From Macrostomum lignano (Eukaryota), in the NCBI GenBank assembly GCA_002269645.1, contig NIVC01002565.1, positions 97,247 to 161,246 on the forward strand: a stretch of DNA of 64,000 nucleotides, given 5' to 3'. The translations under genes were made by a program, and so were the position numbers. Positions 1,390-60,957 of the stretch are shown one piece after another. The notes beneath the pieces were generated by a model. The model was not told where the DNA came from. It made no database searches and saw nothing but the letters and a program-made list of their open reading frames with translations. Each line of letters starts with the position of its first letter. Position 1 is the first letter of the stretch.

Positions 1390-29621
<28,232 letters not shown>

Positions 29622-31943: not shown

Positions 31944-40685
<8,742 letters not shown>

Positions 40686-44737: not shown

Positions 44738-46780
44738 ATGTCGAACGTTGACGTCGAGTACTTATCACGTCGTGACTTTAAAAGCGACTCTGTTTTGGAT
44801 AGAAACCCGAAAACGGAAGAAAGCTCTCTGTCTGATTTTCTTTCTCGTGTTCTTCCCACTCTCGAACACGTCGAACTACCGAAGATGGGAGAGTTGGACC
44901 CAGAGTCCCTGCTAAATTTGCTTGCAAACCAGAAGACTACTCAAGCTAGCGGTATTCGTGGATCGGAATTGAGCGACAGTGCGTCATGGAGGCCGATTCT
45001 TGGCTGTGGACTTGCGACAAGAACAGAAGGTACAGAAGCATTTGGTGATGCAAATTTTAGTCTTCAAAGTTTGGATCACTTGTCAAGTTCTGCTACCCAG
45101 TCTGCGACTTCATCAGCTGCTGGAACTTCTGCCATTGAACAAATGACAGCCAGTGCCGATTTTGACAACCAGCTGCGACAGGCCACCTTTGAGAATAGGT
45201 CCCGCGATTTGTTCCAAAGACTAATAATGCAAGCTTCGATTGCTCAGGGCAAGCGACAGATAACAATTACTGAGCGCATTCAAGTTCCATCATCTGATCA
45301 TGTGGCTGAAATTGTTGGCAAGAATGGTAAGTGTGTTTGTATATTTTTCTTAACATCAATCATCATGAGAAATGGCATATCATCTAATCTAAATAATTTT
45401 GTTTTTCATTAATTTTCAAAAATTAAAAAATAATTTGAAAATTGACATTTAAAACATAGTTTTTTAGTGTAAAAAATTCCTCTTTGAGAATTAATTGTTG
45501 CTTCCAAATATTTTATTTTGAAAATTTCTTATTTAGTTATTTATTTAGCATATTGTCTTGATTTGTAATCTGTAAATTTAAAATAAGCTTCTTTTATTTA
45601 AGTATATTTTATATAAGTTTTTTAAGATTAGAATAAGCCTATTTTGAATTTTAATATTTAAAACTTATTTTCTTTCTAATTACTGGTTCATTTATTTTTT
45701 AATTTAGCTAATTTTGACTTATTTTTTACTTATTCCAGGCCTCCGAATCAAGCAGATCCGTGAACACTTGAAGGTCTGGGTCAAGACACCAACAAGAGAT
45801 GAGCTGCCTATCTTTGAAGTCACTGGAGTGCCAGATAAAGTTACTGAGGTGAGTCACTGTTGCTATTTTTAATTTTCTGACTAATGCATATTGAGCATAT
45901 AAAACTTGGCACATTGCCAAAAATACAAGAACCACTAAATTGTGCTTAGTCATTCAACAAATGGCCCGCAATCAATTGTTTGCAGGCGATCCGAATTCTG
46001 CAGCAGATGAGTGAGCACTTTACCCGGGTGCAGCAGGAACGTCAGACTCGCACTGAACCCACTAGAGTGGAGGAGCGACTGTATGTTGAGCAGGACAAGG
46101 TCGGCCTCATTGTGGGCGCCTCTGGCCAGACCATCCGCTGGGTGCAGCAGCTCTCAGACACGCACATCGCCACGCCGCGCAAGCAGGAGAAGCAGCCCGG
46201 CCTGCGCACCTGCTTCACCATCTGCGGCACCAAGGAGCGGGTCCAGTTTGCCAAGCAGCTCATCTCCGAGTACGTTGCCATGCGATGCCCAGGCCTGTGG
46301 CTCGAGCCCAGCTTGCCCCGCTCCGTCGAGGCTCTCAAACTGGTGGCCGATTTTCATCAGGTGCGCCAGACCAAAGCTGAGTCGGCCGCCCCGACTGTCA
46401 GCGTCACCCCGGCTGCCGGACCCGCCGCCGCTGCTAGCACCGACGATGTCGGAGCTGACGCCTGCATTGGGATCGCCCAGATGTCACTGCTGAACGAGCC
46501 CCAGCAGCAGCAGACCCTGAAGGACGCCCGCCGGCTCTGGCCGGAGCAGGAGCGGCCGAAGCGCCTGTGGAACAGCGCCCTTTTCTTCGGCGGCCTCGCC
46601 GAGCAGCGCCGCTACTCCGCCGACACGCCCGTCAGCCCCATCACCCCCGCCGGAGCCGCCGGCGCGACCGCTGACTGGCCAACAGCCGAGCAGCTGGCCT
46701 CGCTGAAGAAGGTCAGAAGCAACGAGCAACTTGGCGAGTCGCCAGCACCGAACTCAGCCGCCTTCTCTGGCTGGATGTGA
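44738..46780 (+). CDS. MEX3: MEX-3 family RNA-binding protein with two KH domains and no RING domain seen (about 497 aa, 3 exons)
   Basis: Exons 44738-45326, 45739-45848, 45986-46780, phases consistent. KH1: QVPSSDHVAEIVGKNGLRIKQIR..VWVKTPTRDELPIFEVTG. Linker: MSEHFTRV. KH2: VGLIVGASGQTIRWVQQLSDTHIATP. These match MEX-3 signatures (VPxSEHVAEIVGxxG, AEHF, VGLVVGPKGATIKRIQQ). Confidence 0.9.
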
Positions 46781-49481: not shown

Positions 49482-50100
<619 letters not shown>

Positions 50101-51321
50101 TGTATGTATATTTCAGATTTATAGATATACATGCCTTTGTAGTATCTGTAAACTTTAATTTTCAAACGCTCTGCATATACTTGTGGACAACTTAAACATA
50201 TCCAACATAGCGTACAGAATATCTATAAGACATACCATGACTCAAGGTATGAATCACGATCGAGAGGGGATTCGTCAAGGCGATGACTGCTGCTGGCCAG
50301 GGTGCCTGGGCATGACCTCACTTCTTGTCGAGAGCCAGTGCAGCAGTGACTGATTGGCCCAGTGATTTATGCGAGTGTCGTCATCTCCGTACAATGCGCT
50401 GGCTCAGCAGAGAATTCCTGTCTTGTGCGTGCTGAGTCAGCCGATTTTGCTTCCTTCTAATTTTTATCGCATAATTCATACGAAAGAGCCATATATTTCT
50501 ACTAACAGTAAGCATTTGGCAAAGAACGCGGAAATATAAATCACAGAAAAGCAGAGTGATAAAAAGGAATTCCAAGATTCTATAATAACGAAAAACGCTA
50601 TTTTTACTACTCATCGGATTTCCCCGTTGTAAGTAGGGTAGTAAAACATGAAGTTGAAAGATTTTGCAAGGGACAATCAATTTGATTCTTGCCTTGATTC
50701 TTATCAAGTGGAAATTTTCCCTAATTTTCTGTCTCGTTTGTTAAACTGATTTTGCGAGACTAAACGCAGTTAGTAACGAAATCGGAGTGAAAAGAATGAA
50801 AAAAACAAATATTCGACCCCAATTCTGCCACAAAGCGGACCTGTATTCAGGAAAAAACGCTGTTAAAATAGGAAAACTTCAGTTGCCGCTCAGACTTCCG
50901 TTTGTCTCAAAGAGAACTTGAGAGCTCATTGCAACCCCGGAAGTGGTATTGCACCGGAAGTAGCAGGAATAACTCAACTTTCTATGTCTGCTCAGTCAGA
51001 GGAAGGCAATCCCAAAGTTTGCAGGTTCAATAGGTTCATTTGTGCCACCTGGTCCAGGTTAGCAACCAAGGGAAAGGTGAGAGAGGGACTTGTGCAGGTA
51101 TTTTTTAGCTGGGAGATTTTTCGGTGCCTAACGAAGCCTGGCTTTTGATTCGCAGGGCCTCGGGGAGGACCAGCATTAGCGGCCGTCGGATCCGGTTGAA
51201 TTCTCCGCTGCATACAGGCAGACAGCAGACTGACACTCAAGATTACCTGGTCTCTCTCTCTCTCTCTATTTTGCAAGCGAAAGCCGTTGGCGCACTGCTG
51301 CCCGCCTCAGCTAGGCCTGCA

Positions 51322-54300
51322 ATGTCTGAGTCGCCACCGTCTGGAGACTCCAGTAACGCCGCCGGCTCCCAAGAGGCCGCCGCGAGCGACCCCAGCGGCG
51401 AGCTGGCGGCGCAGCTGCACGACGCTGTGCGAGACAACCAGCCCGACAAGCTGCGCCAAGTGCTGCTGCAGTTGGTTGACATTGCCGGCGCTGGCGCCAT
51501 TGAAGCGCCAGATGACCGCGGAGACTCGGCGCTGCACGCGTGCGCCGCTGCCGGTCTGACCGAGTGCGCCGAGCTGCTGCTGACGTTCGGCGCCAATGCG
51601 GACCGGCCAAACTCGGCAGGCGACCGGCCGCTCCACCTGGCTGCAGCGGCGGGCGAGCGCAGCAAAGGCGTCGCCCGCGAGCTGCTCCGGTGCGGCGCCG
51701 ATCCGACTCAGCTCGACGCCATCGGCGACAACGCGCTGCACGTGGCCTGCTACGCCGAGTGTGGCCGCATCGCCGACCTCCTGTTGCGGGCAAAGCCTTC
51801 CATTGTCAACAGTCGGAATAGCAGCGGCAGCACTGGCCTGCATATTGCCGCCTCGTGTGAGAATCATGAGCTGCTTGGCCAGCTGCTCTGTCACGGTGCC
51901 GACTTCTCTCTGGCTGATAGTCGCGGCCAGACGCCGGTCGATTTGCTGCTGCAGGGCCCGGACACATCCGGCATCGACTGCCTCGGCAGGCACCTGATGC
52001 GCCGCCTTCGACAGTTCAATAACGGCCAGGACATAATCGGGGTGTTCGCCTCTTTTGAAGGTCGCGAGTTCGTGCGCCAGTTGCTGCTCATTGACAGCGA
52101 CATTGATGGACAGTCAAAGAGAGCTGAAGCAAAGGACTTGGACCCGGAGGGCTTGGAAGCCGAAGAAGATGAAGAGGCGGTGAAGCAGCGGCAATGGCAG
52201 CTGTCCAGGCTTGAGCTGGCTGCCTCCCGTCGCACCGTGGACGCCAAGCAGCTCATTGATGCTCTGATCGCCGCCTTCCAGGCCGGATTGAGCTGCAGCC
52301 TCGAGTCCAGCGGCCTGCTGAGTCGGATCACCTGGCAGCTGTGCCAGCTGGTGCTGTTTGCCGAGAACACGCGCCTGCTGAAGCGGCTGGTTGAACATCG
52401 GCACCTCTGGAGAGCGCTCTCCCGCCAACTGGAGGTTGCCATCGACAAATTGTATGCCAAGACGTTGCGCAAGCAGAAGGCAGGCGTGCGCGAGCTGCTC
52501 CAGCAGCGGTGCTGCATCGACGGCGGCACTTCGATCTCGTTTGCAAGGCTCAACAAGCTGCTGGCCGAGCTCACCACTTACTGGCAGTTCGCCAGCCGCC
52601 AGATGGTGTTCGACTTTGGAGAGCGACGCGGCGGCGACGACTGGTGCCAGAAGCGGCCGCTCCGAGACCCCGCCCAGTCGCTGGTGCTGTGGGCGATCCT
52701 GAGCGGCCGGCCGGGCCTGGTGCCGATCTTGCTGCAGCAGGAGGAGTTCGACCTGGTGCCGCTAGCCTTGCTCGCCGCAACGCTGCTCCGCTCACTGGCA
52801 CGTCGACGCGACATCGAGGACGTGTTCGCTGACCGGGCCGGTCGCATCGCCGACATCTGCGAGGCGATGGCCGTCAAAGTGATCAAGCAGGTGAAGGAGG
52901 TTGACGATTCACCCGGCAACTGCCTCACCATCAGCTACGTGAGTATGCCTCTGCCCAACTACGCTAACTACACGATTCTTGACCTGTCTGCTCGAGGCGG
53001 GGCGGGCAGTTTCATCAAGCTGGACATTGTTGAACTGGCAACGGAGAAGAACTGGTATGGGGACTTTTTCAACTTCCGCAAGCCTGCCCTGCGCGAGCTG
53101 GTGATTGCGGCCGGGTTCGTTCCACCGCTGCTGCTCTTCCTGCCCGGCCTGCTGCGCCGGTTCCGCGGTCCTGGCACGCGCGCCTTCCTCGACTCGGTGC
53201 TCAACGATTCCGGACCAACCGAACATCCGGGCAACTGTCCGGAGACGTTCCGTCTGCTCGCCTCGGATTTCCAGGTGGCCAGACGCCGACGCCGACGACA
53301 GGACTCTGAACTGGAAGCGCGCAGTCGCCGCCTGTGGCAGCGAGCGAGCGAGTTCGGCAGCGAGCTGGCGCTGTTTTACAACACGCCGTGCGTCAAGTTT
53401 CGCTTGCACGCGGCGGCCTCGTTTGTGTTCATCGGCCTGCTGTCCTACGTGATACTGCACGACTTTCAGGTGACCAGCGGCTCTGGGAAGGGAGCAATCG
53501 ATGAGGAATGAAACTGGGAAGTGGGAAATCAGCACTGTTTCTCGTCCAGAATCATGGATCGGCAATCTTTTATACCTTCAGGGCCAGATGGATATCCAGT
53601 TCATTGCTGCAGGACATTTTAATTGATTTAATTGGAGGGGCCGCAGTCCAGCAGTCTAGCGCGGCGCTCCCATGTTCCAGCGGCCCAGGCTCGATTCCAA
53701 GTGCAGTCATATTCATTTGGGGGCTAAATTGGAATCTCGGCCTGTCTTGAGGGCCGACCCCCAATGCACAGTAAAGTGTACATGCCTAACGATAAATAAC
53801 GCTGGGAGCGCTGTACACTCCTGTGTGAGTGTGTGCCTGTGCGTATGACTGCGTACGTATCCGCGCGCTTGTGTGCCTGCTCACTGTGCTCAGGGGCGAG
53901 TATACTTTTTGTCTTGATAAATCTTAGAGGTGTAACTTAATACGCAGCGTACAGTATTGTTTAACTTTCATTGTCTGTGGTTGAGGTCCACAGAAGGGGT
54001 AAACAACGAAGAGAAAAAGTACAACGATAAATGGATAACCAAGCTGCTACAAAGAACTGCTACACAGCAATGCCTCTCGCCGGTTGTGTGACAATGCCAC
54101 TTAAAGTGCGCCAGGGTGCGCCAGTACACAGCTACCCTGCCTCTAATAAAAAATGGTTAATTCTATAGATTTGGTACTGCAGACGAGGAGGGAAGAAAGG
54201 AAGACGAACAAAAGATAAGAGGAAGGAGACAGAAAAAAGGAGATGGGAAAGGGAGGAGCGAGGAGAGATGATAAAATATTAGTGAAGAGGTGGGGGGAGA

Positions 54301-57300
54301 GAGAAGAGAGAGCAGAGCAGAGAGGAGATGGGGGAGAGAGAGAAGAGAGAGAAGAGCAGAGAGGAGATGGGGGAGAGAGAGAAGAGCAGAGAGGAGATGG
54401 GGGAGAGAGAGAAGAGCAGAGAGGAGATGGGAGAGAGAGAGAAGAGAGAGCAGAGAGAAGATGGGGGAGAGAGAGAAGAGCAGAGAGGAGATGGGGGAGA
54501 GAGAGAAGAGAGAGCAGAGAGAAGATGGGGGAGAGAGAGAAGAGCAGAGAGAAGATGGGGGAGAGAGAGAAGAGCAGAGAGAGATGGGGAGAGAGAGAAG
54601 AGAGAGCAGAGAGAAGATCGGGGAGAGAGAGAAGAGCAGAGAGGAGATGGGGAGAGAGAGAAGAGAGAGCAGAGAGGAGATGGGGGGAGAGAGAAGAGCA
54701 GAGAGGAGATGGGAGAGAGAGAGAAGAGAGAGCAGAGAGGAGATGGGGGGGAGAGAAGAGAGAGCAGAGAGGAGATGGGGGAGAGAGAGAAGAGCAGAGA
54801 GGAGATGGGGGAGAGAGAGAAGAGAGAGCAGAGAGGAGATGGGGGAGAGAGAGAAGAGAGAGCAGAGAGAAGATCGGGGAGAGAGAGAAGAGCAGAGAGG
54901 AGATGGGAGAGAGAGAGAAGAGAGAGCAGAGAGGAGATGGGGGGAGAGAGAAGAGAGAGCAGAGAGGAGATGGGGGAGAGAGAAGAGCAGAGAGGAGATG
55001 GGGGAGAGAGAGAAGTTCAGAGAGGAGATGGGGGAGAGAGAAGAGCAGAGAGGAGATGGGGGAGAGAGAAGAGCAGAGAGGAGATGGGGGAGAGAGAGAA
55101 GAGAGAGCAGAGAGGAGATGGGGGAGAGAGAAGAGCAGAGAGGAGATGGGGGAGAGAGAGAGAGAGAGCAGAGAGGAGATGGGGGAGAGAGAGAAGAGAG
55201 AGCAGAGAGGAGATGGGGAGAGAGAAGAGAGAGCAGAGAGAAGAAGGGGGAGAGAGAAGAGAGAGCAGAGAGGAGATGGGGGAGAGAGAAGAGAGAGCAG
55301 AGAGGAGATGGGGAGAGAGAGAAGAGAGAGCAGAGAGAAGATGGGGGAGAGAGAGAAGAGAGAGCAGAGAGGAGATGGGGGAGAGAGAGAAGAGAGAGCA
55401 GAGAGGAGATGGGGGAGAGAGAAGAGAGAGCAGAGAGGAGATGGGGGAGAGAGAAGAGAGAGCAGAGAGGAGATGGGGGAGAGAGAGAAGAGAGAGCAGA
55501 GAGAAGATCGGGGAGAGAGAGAAGAGCAGAGAGGAGATGGGAGAGAGAGAGAAGAGAGAGCAGAGAGGAGATGGGGGGAGAGAGAAGAGAGAGCAGAGAG
55601 GAGATGGGGGAGAGAGAAGAGAGAGCAGAGAGGAGATGGGGAGAGAGAGAAGAGAGAGCAGAGAGGAGATGGGGGGAGAGAGAAGAGAGAGCAGAGAGGA
55701 GATGGGGGAGAGAGAAGAGAGAGGAGAGCAGAGAGGAGAAAATATAAAAAAGTGCGAGAGGACACAATGGAGGGCGGAGCAAGTGGCCAAAGCTGTGCTT
55801 TGAAATACGAGGTTAATTCAGCTCCAGCTCCGACTTTAGACCCCTGTCCAAAAAAATGCAGTCAATCGAAGGATACAAAATATTTACTAATTAATTTGGA
55901 GGATCTAAAGTTTAAACAGGAAGAGATTAAAGATCACTGGCGCTAATCGGCAGTCTCCCAACCCTTACAACGCGGAGTGCCCTTTTTCATTTTCAGGGAG
56001 ACGCCAGCCCCACAGAGGTGTTCTGCTACCTGACCCTGCTTGGCGTTCTAGTCGAGGAGCTGCGCGAGGTGGTCTCCGCTTGGCGCCAGGAGACACTGGC
56101 GGTCTACCTGACTGACGGCTGGAATGCCATGGACCTGGTTGCAATCCTCTGCGGCTTCCTGGCCTTTGCAGCCAGACAGATGGATTCGCAACATCTGCTG
56201 GTGCTCGGCGGCATGCTCAGCGAGCACGGCAAAGGCTGGGGCGACGTCAGCTACGTACTGATAGTCATCACCACGCTGATCTTCTGGATTCGCATCCTCT
56301 ACATCTCAGTGGTGCTCGAGTCTGTCGGCGTCAAGCTGAAGATGCTGTCTCTCATCGTCAGAAAGGACTTCATCCCGTTTCTGTACATCCTTGTGGTGAT
56401 CATGGTGGGATTCGGAACCACTTTCCACGCCCTCCTGTGGCCAAATGCAAAGTTCTACAGCCAGGGCCGCATCAACGAGATTCCAACAGCGGAGATTCTT
56501 GTGGAAATGTTTCACAGGACCTTTTATACTATTGTTGGTGAGTAAATCAGATGAAAGAGATGCGCAACCGACAGCTCAGCCGCAGCTATTGCGCGGCGCA
56601 TCTGAAGGCTGCGTACGGCTGTTCAGTCCAAGGACTGGGGGGTCGCCACACACACCCTCAATTACCCCAGCTAATGCTGGCACCCATTTTACAGCTGGGT
56701 GAACTGAAGCAATGCAGAGTTAAGTGTCTTGCTCATGGATATAAATTATTCCGAGTGAGTTGAGAATCGAACCCCCCGACCTTCAAGTCGTGAGTCCGAC
56801 GCTCTGACCACTAGGCTACAGCCCCCTAGCACGTCAAGAGACAATTTACAAGTATATAAGCATGAATAACTAAAAGCAGACTCATAAACTCATACACACG
56901 CTCACACAGGGAGCACAGCGGCACTTGAATTTCTCATCGTGACTCACCAAGTGTACGTACATTGAGCCCCAAATTAATGCGGTCACGCGCTGAATCGAAC
57001 CAATGTACTTTAGCCGACGCACTACCCCCCCCTCAGTGGGCAATCTCTTATGAATTTATGATGCTCAACCTATCGCTACTGTCTCGAACTTATTGCTACT
57101 GAGCAGGCGAGTACGGCCTGGACGACCTGAAGAAATAGTGCGACGCTCCAACAAGCGCCAACGTGTCCACCCAGCTGGCAACGGAGTCAATGATTGCAGA
57201 GAAGTGCGTCGGCTTCCCTGGCAATGTGCTGGTGCCGTACGGTCTCATGGCAGCGTACATAGTGATCGTGCAGGTGCTTCTCCTGAACGTCATCGTGGCC

Positions 57301-57741
57301 ATGTTCAGCAAGACCGTCGATATGGTCGACTCCGAGTCCAAGTCGCTCTGGCTATTTGAGCGCTACGACCTCAGCCGGGAGTTCTCCAAGCGCTCCCCGC
57401 TGCCGGCACCGCTCAACCTGCTGTTGGAGGGCCGCAACCTGACGGCCTGGCTGCTGGTCTCTCTGCTACGCCGCCTCATCGGTCGGGCGCCTCGACGCCG
57501 CACAATGCTAGACGTGCTGGCGCAGAATACCAGGAACTTTGTGCACCTGTTCTACCTGTACTACCAGTCGGTCACACTGAGAAAACTGCGCAACCGGCTG
57601 AGCTGCACCCGCTGGCAGCTGGAGGAGGATGAGTTCAGCCAGGAGGGCTTCGCACTACTCACCCGACTGGAGGAGCTGCGCGCTGCACTGGAGGGCGCCA
57701 GGATTGAGGAGCGGCGAGGCACCGGCGGCAGGGACGATTAA
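51322..57741 (+). CDS. Ankyrin-repeat TRPM-like cation channel (about 1,107 codons, 3 coding exons) with an in-frame TAG at 57136-57138
   Basis: Exons 51322-53469, 55997-56537, 57107-57741. About 5 ankyrin repeats (GDSALHACAAAG, GDRPLHLAAAAG, GDNALHVACYAE, GSTGLHIAASCE). TRPM MHR4-like SLVLWAILSGR..LALLAATLLRSLA..NYTILDLS..KNWYG. S1-S4 with EELRE, WNAMD and FWIRIL; pore FYTIVGE; S6 LLLNVIVAMFS; TRP box WLFERY..RSPLPAPLNLL. The start codon is uncertain: the frame is open from 51124, and an acceptor-like (CT)n..CAAG lies at about 51277. Confidence 0.85.
53810..53895 (-). repeat. Unclassified dispersed repeat (family A), copy 4
   Basis: CTGTACACTCCTGTGTGAGTGTGTGCCTG...GTGCTCAG matches the family-A terminus. 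Confidence 0.55.
54285..55740. repeat. About 1.45-kb purine-rich compound minisatellite (GAGAGAAGAG(AGAG)CAGAGAGGAGATGGGGG), TRP intron 1
   Basis: Almost pure A/G on the + strand; source of the long RE-rich and LS-rich ORFs. Confidence 0.95.
56563..56828 (-). mobile_element. tRNA-derived CORE-like SINE, copy 5 (TRP intron 2)
   Basis: Same sequence family as copies 1-4; starts about 25 nt after the splice donor. Confidence 0.87.
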
Positions 57742-58179
57742 GTCAAGGACTACTCAAGTAGAAGGACAGGAAACTTCGTTTCTTGCAAAATTTTACAAGA
57801 AATTATAATCTATGTAAATTGTATATCCTCCTCCGTACAATCGTACATGCACTGCGCCTAAAAATCATTAAAATTATGGCACAAACGACTCATTGGCTTT
57901 ATGAATCTACGAGTATTTTATTCATCTTAGCTTGACTGAATGATGATTTCTAAAACAACAGAGCCGTGCATTTTTTATGATTGTTAGATACAGGACATGT
58001 ACGTAGGGTATAGCATGAACATAAAGACACATCAAAATATGAACATTGGGTCTTCCTAGCCGTTAAAAACAATAATAATTTTTGTGCTGAAAAAAATGAA
58101 AACCTCCCATCTACGCAATGTACTACTTCAGTAAACCTGCCTTTTAAAATTTCCCAAAAACGTGTTTCCCGTCCATCTA

Positions 58180-58347
58180 CTTGAGTAGTCCTTGAGTAGT
58201 CCTTGAGTAGTCCTTGAGTAGTCCTTGAGTAGTCCTTGAGTAGTCCTTGAGTAGTCCTTGAGTAGTCCTTGAGTAGTCCTTGAGTAGTCCTTGAGTAGTC
58301 CTTGAGTAGTCCTTGAGTAGTCTTGAGTAGTCCTTGAGTAGTCCTTG
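58180..58347. repeat. 11-bp minisatellite (TTGAGTAGTCC), about 15 copies
   Basis: Period 11 read directly. Confidence 0.95.
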
Positions 58348-58926
58348 GATTGAATGACGGAGCAAAGCGACTTACAATCCGCTCTAGGCTATATGGATCT
58401 CCTATGGAGCAGCAATTCCGATTTCGTTGGGTCATAGTACACGCATGTGCAATTCCAGTAGAAAATAATGAAAATCTTGTCAAATTTATGCCAGAAACGA
58501 TGAAAGTAGCTCGTAAATCAGAAGTCGTGCATCGGCAGTCACGGATATTCTTTGGTCAGGTAGCCAAGCAGCCTTTTTTAATTTGTTGTTATACGGTAAA
58601 AAAAAATATAATTGGAGAAACCTAAGTTTTATAGTGACAAAAAGTTTGTAAAACGCACGTTATACTACTTCTAGTGGACTACTTGCTGTCATTAAGATTT
58701 TTTGCGCGTGCGAATTATTCTCTTCTGGAAAGTGAATAATTTAGACGTTGAGAGACTTTTGTTTAATTTGTTTATTATCCAGACGTTATAGTTGTTATAT
58801 CAATTAGGATGAAAACAACTTTGTTCCTTTCCACTTCACAAATATTTTGACTCGCGTGCCGATGCATTAAACAGAAATTTCCAAATCTTCCGGCCAAATT
58901 GTGGGTGCAGCCGACTCTCAAAGCAA

Positions 58927-60957
58927 TCAAAGTCCCATTCGGAACGCCAGTCTGCCAAAGTAGTAAGTTATCAGAGCAGCCAGGACCACGAAGGCCAAGG
59001 GAACTAAATAGAAAATGGCCTGCTTCTTAGAATTCTCATAGTTCTGCATGTTGATGGCGATGAGTTGCTCCTCAGATAGGGGAGAAACTGCGGTGATGGG
59101 CGCCTGGGTCGTTTCAGAGGCTGCTGCAGGCGACATGGTGGTCGGCGTACTTGTGGTAGTTGGAGTAGCTGTGGTAGTTGGAGTAGCTGAAGTAGTTAAA
59201 GTAGTTGTGGTGGTGGGTGTAGTTGTGCTGGTGGGTGTAGTTGTGCTGGTGGGTGTAGTTGTGGTGGTGGGTGTAGTTGTGCTAGTCGCGAGATATCTTA
59301 GGGGAATGCAACAGATAAACTGTGCCGAATGAGGAGAGAAGACTTGCTCCTTCAACTCTCTGGTGCTGTGCTCAATGACGATTCCGTAGTTTGACTATGT
59401 TACTTTCTGCTTGAAATATTTGTCATATAGAGGCAATCCTGTCGCGCGTAACTTCGGTCCATGGTGTTGTTCAACCTGTACGGTGGTTCTTCGTATGCCA
59501 TCAGGCAACCGTCAGAACATCCGCTTTTGATGGAGTTGAACACGCTGGAATATCAATAAATGAGGAAATATTCAATATCGGCACTTATCCGAGTGTTAAA
59601 TCAGATTCAGACAGTCAGGACAACTCACGAACTGAAAGCTGATCGAGCAGCGGTCTCAGTCAGATCAATCAGCGTCTCTCCGCTGGCCAGGCTGCACATG
59701 GTCGGCGCCTCCCAGAACTTCATAGAATAGCCGCCACGTCGAAAGCAAAAGGAGCGGCCGTCGCTCGAGTTGGCGCAGGTGTAGCCAGAAGCCGGTGCTG
59801 GGCAGCAGGTCAGGTTGGATATCGGACACACGCACATGCAGATGGCGTAGCCATCGTCATTTATTTCTCTAGAGTTCCAATTAGTCACGTTGACTGTGGT
59901 GTCCGTGATCACACCCACTGTTGGGTTGGCCTCTGTGCTGGTGAAGACTTCGCTCGACGGGCTCACGTCGGTGCTGGAGACGTACAGCTGGCTGGTCTGG
60001 CTGCGCCAGGCGAACACCCTGTCTGCCGGGCTGGTGCGGGCGGCCATACTGGCTCCGATCCAGTACCTTGACGCGCTGATGCCGCTGCGGATGGAGTAAT
60101 AAAAACTATGTCGATGAGCTGAGAAGTTATTTTTTAAACTTTTGTGTGTGAGTGTGCAGCATGGGTTAATTTAACTAACGTCTTTCCAGACAGTTAATTA
60201 GCTCGTAGGAGACAAATGTTTTGGCAAAAACGCAATCAAAATTGGGCAAACGTTAAATATCTACAAACAAACAGATAGATCTTAGAAATTTAGTGTAACG
60301 GTAAGTGGGTTGATGGCTGGGACACAAGCGGATCAGTGCGTGCTCAACAATAAATGCAAGTGATGTCTGATATCGAACATCGATCAGAGTCGAAGGCAAA
60401 AGGTGAGTTTTTTATTTAAGATGCAGTTCGAAACCAAATTGCGTCGTAAACGCACGAACAACTCGAGCAGCAATCGAAGGGAAATCATTTCTTGAGTTAG
60501 TCGACCAAATCGATTAATTTAATATGGTGTTTTTAGCAATAATTTTCACTTGTCTATGTGTTGTGTATATTGTTTGAGCATGGTGCAAGCAACAAATATT
60601 TTCGTAGTCCTTTAGGGCGAGACACTCTTCTCTGGTGGACTTTCCCAACTTCTCTGCTCTAAATTGACTTCGTGACTTTTCGTTTCCCAGCGTCGTTTGT
60701 ACTCACCTGGTCAATGTTGTAAAATTATCGTAGAACAGTTCAAACGATGACTGGTCCAAATTCTGCATGCCAAAGCTCGAGCAGTAGGTGCCCACGTAGG
60801 CATCGTCACCCAGAATGCTGATGTTGTAGCATCGGTCCGCCTTGCACAGCACCGCGGATTTGAAGACCTGCCCGTCTGTCAGCCTGCCTGCCGACAGGAT
60901 GATGACGCACACAGTCCACAGGGCTGCCAGCTCAGTAAGCTGGCTTCGTTGTAGCAT
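58927..60957 (-). pseudogene. C-type-lectin-like, Thr/Pro mucin-stalk, single-pass membrane protein, paralogue A (frameshift plus nonsense in exon 3)
   Basis: Exons 60957-60707, 60084-59629, 59544-58927. Signal-peptide-like N-terminus, Cys-rich lectin-like motifs (C..DRCY, YWIG..FAW, C..GRSFCF..FWEAPTMC..LI), TTP-rich stalk, TM IFYLVPLAFVVLAALITYYF. Alignment to paralogue B requires a 1-nt deletion near 59463 and reads through TAG at 59397-59395. The lectin assignment is tentative. Confidence 0.6.

Follow-up and report, generated by a model that had tools for sequence, protein, structure and literature searches.

Does a TRPM-type channel bearing ankyrin repeats exist, and, if so, does it represent an undescribed branch of the TRP channels? 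The question is raised by a gene at positions 51322-57741 on the forward strand of a 64,000-nucleotide stretch of the free-living flatworm Macrostomum lignano (contig NIVC01002565.1; the whole stretch is termed the window hereafter). By the textbook rule, TRPMs possess no ankyrin repeats. The original prediction, made without knowing the source of the DNA, described the gene product as about five ankyrin repeats placed on a TRPM-like core of six transmembrane (TM) segments, regarded it as a domain-shuffled or early-branching subfamily with possible TRPA-like cysteine sensing, and suggested a domain map, an AlphaFold/Foldseek comparison, and a count of paralogues in flatworms as checks. The guess of flatworms was correct. 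The analyses described below recovered the predicted combination of domains, albeit not as a novelty: the architecture is already known and defines the flatworm TRPM_MCLZ (or "TRPM-like") clade described between 2023 and 2026. As judged from the sequence, the locus is very probably a macrostomid three-exon gene encoding a subunit of a TRPM-like cation channel of this ankyrin-bearing clade.

Gene structure and domain architecture

The coding sequence of the channel gene comprises three exons, which amount to 1107 codons after splicing, and all of the exon borders are canonical (GT..AG). The features of the gene are as follows (a slash marks a splice junction).

51322..53469, plus strand: exon 1, codons 1-716; one open frame of 2148 nt from the ATG at 51322 to the donor CAG/GTGACC; N-terminus, ankyrin repeats, MHR3-like helical region, MHR4/TRPM2-like block, pre-S1 and S1
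51403..51987, plus strand: ankyrin-repeat domain, residues ~28-222; Pfam matches within 32-212 (Ank_2, 1e-21; Ank, 4e-18; Ank_3/4/5)
51988..52641, plus strand: helical linker, residues ~223-440, MHR3-like by fold only
52648..53016, plus strand: MHR4-type block, residues 443-565; Pfam PF25508 (TRPM2-like domain)
53470..55996, plus strand: intron 1, phase 0, GT..AG; contains a GA-rich minisatellite (54297-55739, 1.4 kb, units of 32-34 bp)
55997..56537, plus strand: exon 2, codons 717-897 (first base of 897); acceptor TTTTCAG/GGAGAC, donor GTTG/GTGAGT; S2, S3, S4, S4-S5 linker, S5 and pore helix
56538..57106, plus strand: intron 2, phase 1, within Gly897 of TIVG/E; holds a SINE-like repeat of ~270 bp
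57107..57741, plus strand: exon 3, codons 897-1107; acceptor GAGCAG/GC, TAA at 57739-57741; selectivity filter GEYGLDD, pore loop, S6, TRP helix (WLFERY ... LPAPLN) and C-terminal helices
57136..57138, plus strand: in-frame TAG at codon 907, in the pore loop directly before the conserved Cys908 and upstream of S6

When the assembled protein was subjected to tblastn against the window, the match was 100% across codons 1-716. Tandem paralogues and an alternative exon 3, such as the 3a/3b pair of Opisthorchis, were considered and rejected, as the same search retrieved the three known exons only. The anticipated location of the ankyrin repeats and an MHR4-like block in one exon was confirmed by the single 2148-nt exon 1 and by Pfam. 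Since the ankyrin repeats, the MHR4 block, and S1 reside in one uninterrupted exon, the fusion stems neither from the joining of two genes nor from an artefact of the gene model.

The protein consists, in order, of ~5 ankyrin repeats, MHR3-like helices, MHR4, S1-S6 with a pore helix, the TRP helix, and C-terminal helices, and is devoid of SLOG. The motifs SLVLWAILSGR, LALLAATLLRSLA, YTILDLS, NWYG, WLFERY, and SPLPAPLNLL were located along it. By eye and with a consensus repeat, the ankyrin register was set at residues ~28-58, 64-96, 97-131, 132-165, and 166-198, followed by a partial sixth repeat. The domain map obtained with Pfam is Ank, PF25508, and Ion_trans (residues 703-973), and no match to SLOG/LSDAT (MHR1/2; PF18139/PF18171), NUDIX, or alpha-kinase was found in the protein even at E<=1, in agreement with the predicted absence of MHR1/2, NUDT9-H, and kinase domains.

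The affinity of the protein to TRPM begins behind the ankyrin repeats. In a phmmer search against the PDB, the structures of TRPM1, TRPM3, and TRPM4 aligned to residues 440-1013 with E values of 1e-34 to 1e-29, the alignments starting at positions 440-450 of the query, while ankyrin proteins and NOMPC matched the full protein via the N-terminus only. With the TM domain alone as the query, all of the 60 best matches were TRPMs (E of 2e-22 to 1e-10). In the search with the full protein, the TM region of NOMPC scored 13 bits in contrast to ~100-120 bits for TRPMs. A profile of the family behaved in the same way: nvTRPM2 was matched from profile position 441 (E of 2.5e-85) and TRPM3 over positions 451-1145, including the C-terminal helices (E of 7e-75). 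These sequence comparisons assign the TM domain to the TRPM type, and not to TRPC, TRPN, or TRPA; the predicted TRPM-like six-TM core with its TRP box was thus recovered, and the grouping with an ordinary ankyrin TRP, which had been named as a possible refutation, was not found.

The structure modelled by AlphaFold2 (AF2) from 28 family sequences was helical throughout, with a mean predicted local distance difference test score (pLDDT) of 79.4 and a predicted template modelling score of 0.77. The blocks covering residues 31-230 (ankyrin region) received mean pLDDT values of 81-95, and residues 223-440 were all-helical. Exon 2 contributes helices at 721-746, 757-781, 791-823, 841-863, and 880-896, and exon 3 those of S6 (935-963) and the TRP helix (967-991), followed by 1000-1021, 1030-1062, and 1075-1093. 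Among the first 20 matches of the model in the PDB detected by Foldseek, ranks 1-19 were TRPM chains (TRPM2, TRPM3, TRPM4, and TRPM5) and rank 20 was NOMPC, so that the proposed structural check returned a TRPM fold. The best-fitting chains (TRPM3, TRPM4, and nvTRPM2) aligned over ~820-850 columns, beyond the extent of the sequence match. As far as the model can tell, residues ~223-440 may be the equivalent of MHR3.

The protein shares MHR4, pre-S1, S1-S6, the TRP box (WxFxRY plus LPxP), the rib and pole helices, the Cys pair of the pore loop, and the acidic pattern of the Ca2+ site in S2/S3 with the canonical TRPMs (TRPM1-8, nvTRPM2, and TRPM_PZQ), but differs from them in lacking MHR1/2 (SLOG), NUDT9-H, and kinase domains and in possessing true N-terminal ankyrin repeats instead. 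TRPA1 and TRPN/NOMPC also place an N-terminal ankyrin solenoid before a six-TM TRP channel; however, their TM domain and linker are of another type, and the window protein has only ~5 repeats in contrast to ~16 in TRPA1 and 29 in NOMPC. The soromelastatins (TRPS) possess SLOG and Nudix domains and a divergent TRP box 2, and are ankyrin-free (PMC7306681). The window protein shows no SLOG/NUDIX match, carries ankyrin repeats, and has the TRP box WLFERY ... LPAPLN.

Relatives, phylogeny and origin of the ankyrin-bearing clade

A word-indexed protein search retrieved three M. lignano proteins with 48-56% identity to the window protein, and an exhaustive HMMER search covered 1.84 billion cluster representatives. 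In the latter, the M. lignano proteins scored from 883 down to 213 bits and the proteins of flukes and tapeworms ~150-270 bits, while the SLOG-bearing TRPMs among the matches checked reached at most ~132 bits. Nearly all of the high scorers possessed Ank and Ion_trans without SLOG in the Pfam analysis, and most of them the TRPM2-like domain as well; the exceptions among the top scorers were two short models with Ion_trans only. SLOG was present in 13 of the 39 nearest representatives, in contrast to the window protein. The high-scoring relatives were from M. lignano (many gene groups), Opisthorchis, Dicrocoelium, Schistocephalus, Fasciolopsis, and Protopolystoma, and a second search added Schistosoma, Trichobilharzia, Fasciola, Calicophoron, Echinococcus, Taenia, Mesocestoides, and others. 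The named members of the ankyrin-bearing clade are platyhelminths without exception.

This family has a described member. Smp_333650 of S. mansoni (UniProt A0A5K4FCC0) is TRPM_MCLZ, the product of a three-exon gene with "multiple ankyrin-like repeats", which is activated by meclonazepam via a pocket in the S1-S4 domain (Park et al., PMC10788528). Its orthologues are found in trematodes, monogeneans, and cestodes. TRPM_MCLZ was noted to carry ankyrin-repeat modules instead of MHR1/2 or SLOG (Sprague et al., PMC11731825), and Rohr et al. (PMC12861061) reported the N-terminal ankyrin repeats, placed the group "next to" other TRPMs, and proposed the name "TRPM-like". Among our matches, the Schistosoma cluster representative P0197 carries H827, H831, Y864, E868, R943, H946, Y1038, and Y1117. 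These residues and their numbers are exactly those published for Sm.TRPM_MCLZ (PMC10788528), and we thus identified P0197 as TRPM_MCLZ. The supposition of an undescribed domain-shuffled subfamily did not hold, since the architecture of the window protein had been described for TRPM_MCLZ in the three studies cited above, an outcome that the original prediction had itself named as a refutation.

The window protein and TRPM_MCLZ are alike in having ankyrin repeats at the N-terminus in the position of MHR1/2-SLOG, a TRPM-type six-TM domain, the TRP helix, and the C-terminal helices, and in the conserved Tyr of the pore helix (Y1038 in TRPM_MCLZ, Y893 in the window protein). On the other hand, the overall identity between the two is ~22%, TRPM_MCLZ is longer (~1380 residues vs 1107), the selectivity filter is FEVS in TRPM_MCLZ but GEYGLDD in the window protein, and a premature stop is seen in the window copy. 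Each of the two genes has three exons, but these are partitioned differently: exon 3 of S. mansoni encodes the whole channel domain (PMC12861061), whereas in the window gene S1 belongs to exon 1 and the segments from S2 up to the pore helix to exon 2. In the M. lignano orthologue, intron 1 is missing. As a side observation on this family, the Opisthorchis viverrini models P0011 and P0173 contain two complete channel domains in tandem (668-985 and 1362-1669 in P0011). A duplicated exon 3a/3b is known in Opisthorchis TRPM_MCLZ (Rohr et al. 2026, PMC12861061), and the tandem domains appear to be exons 3a and 3b read through into one model.

The main phylogeny was inferred by the neighbour-joining method from 281 columns of the TM domain of 54 sequences with 200 bootstrap replicates, unrooted and without an outgroup. 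The ankyrin-bearing clade was separated from all other TRPM-like representatives with a bootstrap support of 100%. Within the clade, the neodermatan TRPM_MCLZ orthologues and the Macrostomum sequences formed one group each, both with 100% support. The window sequence grouped with Mlig004154 and Mlig030258 (100%) and, of the two, with Mlig004154 (75%). The window protein therefore belongs to the TRPM_MCLZ clade, inside an expansion specific to Macrostomum. A larger neighbour-joining tree of 137 alignable representatives (50 bootstraps) was re-rooted on mollusc TRPM2; midpoint rooting of this tree, which split the ankyrin clade, was discarded in favour of the mollusc root.

The proposed count of flatworm paralogues yielded at least 12 groups of the ankyrin-bearing TRPM-like family in M. 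lignano, in contrast to one TRPM_MCLZ per neodermatan species. The groups, drawn from the M. lignano proteins P0001-P0014, P0030/31, P0129, P0176-7, and P0193, are Mlig004154, 030258, 033956, 022043, 012389, 020550, 019746, 030565, 023207, 008432/029514, 011337, and 000356. As the window gene lies in a Macrostomum-only expansion sister to the neodermatan genes, it is a co-orthologue of TRPM_MCLZ and not a one-to-one orthologue, and the M. lignano paralogues are jointly co-orthologous to the single TRPM_MCLZ of the parasites. The radiation in Macrostomum itself is supported by these counts.

The closest relative of the window protein is that of Mlig004154g2 (P0001, a "hypothetical protein" of the PAA series), with 54-61% identity and the same architecture. 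A KH-domain gene lies directly upstream of the channel gene in the window (44738-46780, plus strand) and also upstream of Mlig004154g2 (L001 382-3082, M. lignano NIVC01003136.1), in the same orientation and with ~53% identity. This upstream gene, kept in position and orientation, represents synteny in support of orthology, and marks Mlig004154 of M. lignano as the syntenic orthologue of the window gene. The position and phase of intron 2 are common to the two genes. Intron 1 is absent from Mlig004154g2, in which the coding sequence is continuous at that site (L001 ~12100-12200), and was gained or lost between the two loci. Mlig004154g2 differs further in a 1-nt frameshift after S6, at ...MVDS/ESKSLWLFERY with the slash here marking the shift (L001 ~13095-13150, NIVC01003136.1); the annotated protein P0001 ends in a spurious tail, and the TRP box and C-terminus go on in another frame. 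The frameshift may be an assembly error. Neither the size of the Macrostomum expansion nor the gain or loss of intron 1 is mentioned in the literature searched, which treats parasitic flatworms; both are minor points.

How such a combination of domains arose can be explained in more than one way. An assembly or annotation chimera, in which an ankyrin-repeat gene was wrongly joined to a TRPM gene, has nothing in its favour beyond the unusual combination of domains, and is practically negligible in probability: the ankyrin repeats, MHR4, and S1 share one frame without interruption, the same architecture recurs in independent genomes from at least nine flatworm genera, and Sm.TRPM_MCLZ has been cloned from cDNA and is functional (PMC10788528). 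Hardly more credit can be given to an ordinary ankyrin TRP (TRPA, TRPN, TRPC, or TRPV) with a TM domain only superficially resembling that of TRPM and, if TRPA-like, with electrophile-sensing cysteines. TRPA1 and NOMPC did score high against the family profile and NOMPC appeared in the Foldseek matches, but the best stretches of the profile matches are confined to the ankyrin region (positions 34-248), and the scores of the TM domain presented above separate the protein from NOMPC. Furthermore, no cysteine of the ankyrin region is invariant or nearly so in the 28-sequence family alignment, and only C74, C82, and C143 are common to the window protein and its two closest paralogues. With no ankyrin cysteine conserved family-wide, the proposed TRPA-like electrophile sensing is left without support.

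It is also conceivable, albeit unlikely in our view, that the clade is an early-branching separate TRP subfamily that retains ankyrin repeats from the time before the fusion with SLOG, and not a derivative of TRPM in which ankyrin repeats took the place of SLOG. The fully supported separation of the clade from the other TRPM-like representatives, the position "next to" other TRPMs and the name "TRPM-like" given by Rohr et al. (PMC12861061), and the degenerate ankyrin repeats reported within MHR3 and MHR4 of TRPM (PMC13143021) are in line with this scenario. Nevertheless, a tree without an outgroup cannot support a basal position, the protein matches TRPM in MHR4, the TM domain, the TRP box, and the C-terminal helices over the whole length, and TRPM and TRPS are reported as SLOG-linked and ankyrin-free from cnidarians to vertebrates (PMC7306681), so that an ancient origin of the ankyrin clade would need many losses. 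The restriction of the named members to platyhelminths instead speaks for SLOG having been replaced secondarily by ankyrin repeats. We grant a similarly small probability to the extended scenario in which the clade is an old, further TRP family that survived only in flatworms, with a dozen or more sensory channels in the free-living Macrostomum and a single copy in the parasites. In its ankyrin-for-SLOG architecture, the TRPM_MCLZ family departs from the textbook rule.

Several points weigh against the assignment of the locus to a TRPM-like channel gene of this clade. Residues 223-440 matched MHR3 neither in Pfam nor among the PDB sequences, and PF25508 exceeded the cut-off by a slight margin (29.7 bits vs 27). 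The trees are distance-based and unrooted, containing no TRPC, TRPN, TRPA, or TRPS sequences, and the 30-member ankyrin-bearing clade, albeit the same in the 137-sequence tree, was exactly recovered in only 60% of the 50 bootstraps. The channel properties, the ligand site, and the Ca2+ site proposed below are drawn from the alignment and from analogy with other TRPMs. Finally, the TAG in the pore loop would remove S6, leaving the assembled sequence without a complete channel.

Putative ligand pocket, pore and the premature stop codon

The window gene would encode one subunit of a TRPM-like cation channel, a tetramer with a pore formed by S5, S6, and the pore helix. In TRPM_MCLZ, TRPM_PZQ, and TRPM8, the cavity that lies between the TRP helix and S1-S4 accommodates meclonazepam, praziquantel, and menthol, respectively, and the likeliest mechanism for the macrostomid channel would be gating from the corresponding cavity by Ca2+ and/or a small ligand. 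The TRPM-type pattern of the Ca2+ site is kept in the protein (S2, E737 and E740; S3, N759 and D762; TRP helix, E988). The ankyrin solenoid, which stands in place of the ligand-binding SLOG, would probably act in the cytoplasm as a scaffold or a module for interactions, and not as a nucleotide sensor.

In the TRPM1/3/6/7 group, which is permeable to divalent ions, the filter follows a Gly-Glu pattern. The filter of the window protein has Gly-Glu with acidic residues behind it (GEYGLDD), which suggests a non-selective cation pore permeable to Ca2+. The pore loop is bracketed by a pair of cysteines, C908 and C930, at least 90% conserved in the family alignment (28 sequences).

Three of the six residues in contact with meclonazepam are kept in the window protein (H696, E737, and R815, equivalent to H827, E868, and R943 of TRPM_MCLZ), and the other three, H831, Y864, and Y1117, are changed to S700, V733, and F989. 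At the gatekeeper position in S4, the protein has Y818 in place of H946 in Sm.TRPM_MCLZ, and a Tyr at this position lowers the sensitivity to meclonazepam in Asian schistosomes and Fasciola (PMC10788528; PMC12861061). With half of the contacts changed and a Tyr gatekeeper, this paralogue is not expected to respond to meclonazepam; these differences concern the response to the drug and do not bear on the place of the protein in the clade. Most of the other M. lignano paralogues keep the pocket residues, namely the His-His of S1, the Glu of S2, and the Arg of S4. As a target of anthelmintic drugs, the TRPM_MCLZ family has been validated, and a free-living flatworm with many paralogues provides natural variation around the S1-S4 ligand pocket as well as a tractable non-parasitic model for the stimuli of the channel and the role of the ankyrin domain. 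The value added by the window locus itself is small, as it is one more paralogue, possibly a disabled one.

The in-frame TAG at codon 907 was overlooked in the original prediction. At this column, M. lignano has GTG (Val), as in Mlig004154g2, or Glu. Two ways of splicing out the TAG were tried and rejected: a GT..AG intron at 57111-57138 (28 nt) shifts the frame, and the donor at 56534 combined with the acceptor at 57138 deletes the filter (VGEYGLDDLKK). A variant genetic code is also unlikely, as the TAG is the only one among the 1107 codons and the 716 codons of exon 1 are free of it. The 201 codons following the TAG are open and conserved, which is expected by chance at ~0.002 from the base composition, and residues 973-1094 in exon 3 are 57% identical to the Mlig004154g2 locus. 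Since the downstream codons are open and conserved to this level, the lesion is very recent, heterozygous, or an error. Either a base error is present in the window copy, or the copy is a null allele or pseudogene of very recent origin.

We regard it as a tentative but serious possibility that the TAG is real and fixed and that the locus is a young pseudogene that arose as a large family of paralogues underwent birth-and-death turnover, in which case the assignment to the family stands but no channel is made from this locus. The TAG lies upstream of S6, no combination of GT..AG removes it in frame, the family is highly duplicated in Macrostomum, and Mlig004154g2 is likewise damaged in exon 3 by the 1-nt frameshift. 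On the other hand, the TAG is the sole lesion in 1107 codons, the splice sites are intact, and the stretch behind the TAG is open and conserved. The same picture would arise from a single wrong base call or from a null allele in the heterozygous state, and the frameshift of Mlig004154g2 can be equally explained by an error in the assembly.

Other features of the window

The SINE-like repeat (short interspersed nuclear element) of ~270 bp found in intron 2 of the channel gene is present in five copies in the window, which are 87-92% identical to one another. No tRNA gene was called by ARAGORN over positions 50000-59000 of the window. The copies are located as follows.

56558-56830: SINE-like repeat, inside intron 2 of the channel gene
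10450-10720: SINE-like repeat
15671-15944: SINE-like repeat
4526-4790, minus strand: SINE-like repeat
2570-2805: SINE-like repeat

Two further coding regions were recognized. A multi-exon gene at ~7250-26500 (plus strand) encodes an RIH domain (RYDR_ITPR) and a C-terminal Ion_trans, and is of the IP3-receptor/ryanodine-receptor type; long coding-like minisatellites are found at 25.7-27.4 kb, in or beside this gene. At 35227-35649 (minus strand), there is an exon for the catalytic core of a protein kinase (...DFGLAR; Pkinase, 1.6e-31), which is MAPK/NLK-like by eye. Long (ATCT)n microsatellites occupy 49482-50097 (~154 copies) and 1467-2018, and further long arrays of low complexity are located at 30.6-31.7 kb, 38.0-38.8 kb, and 58180-58347.

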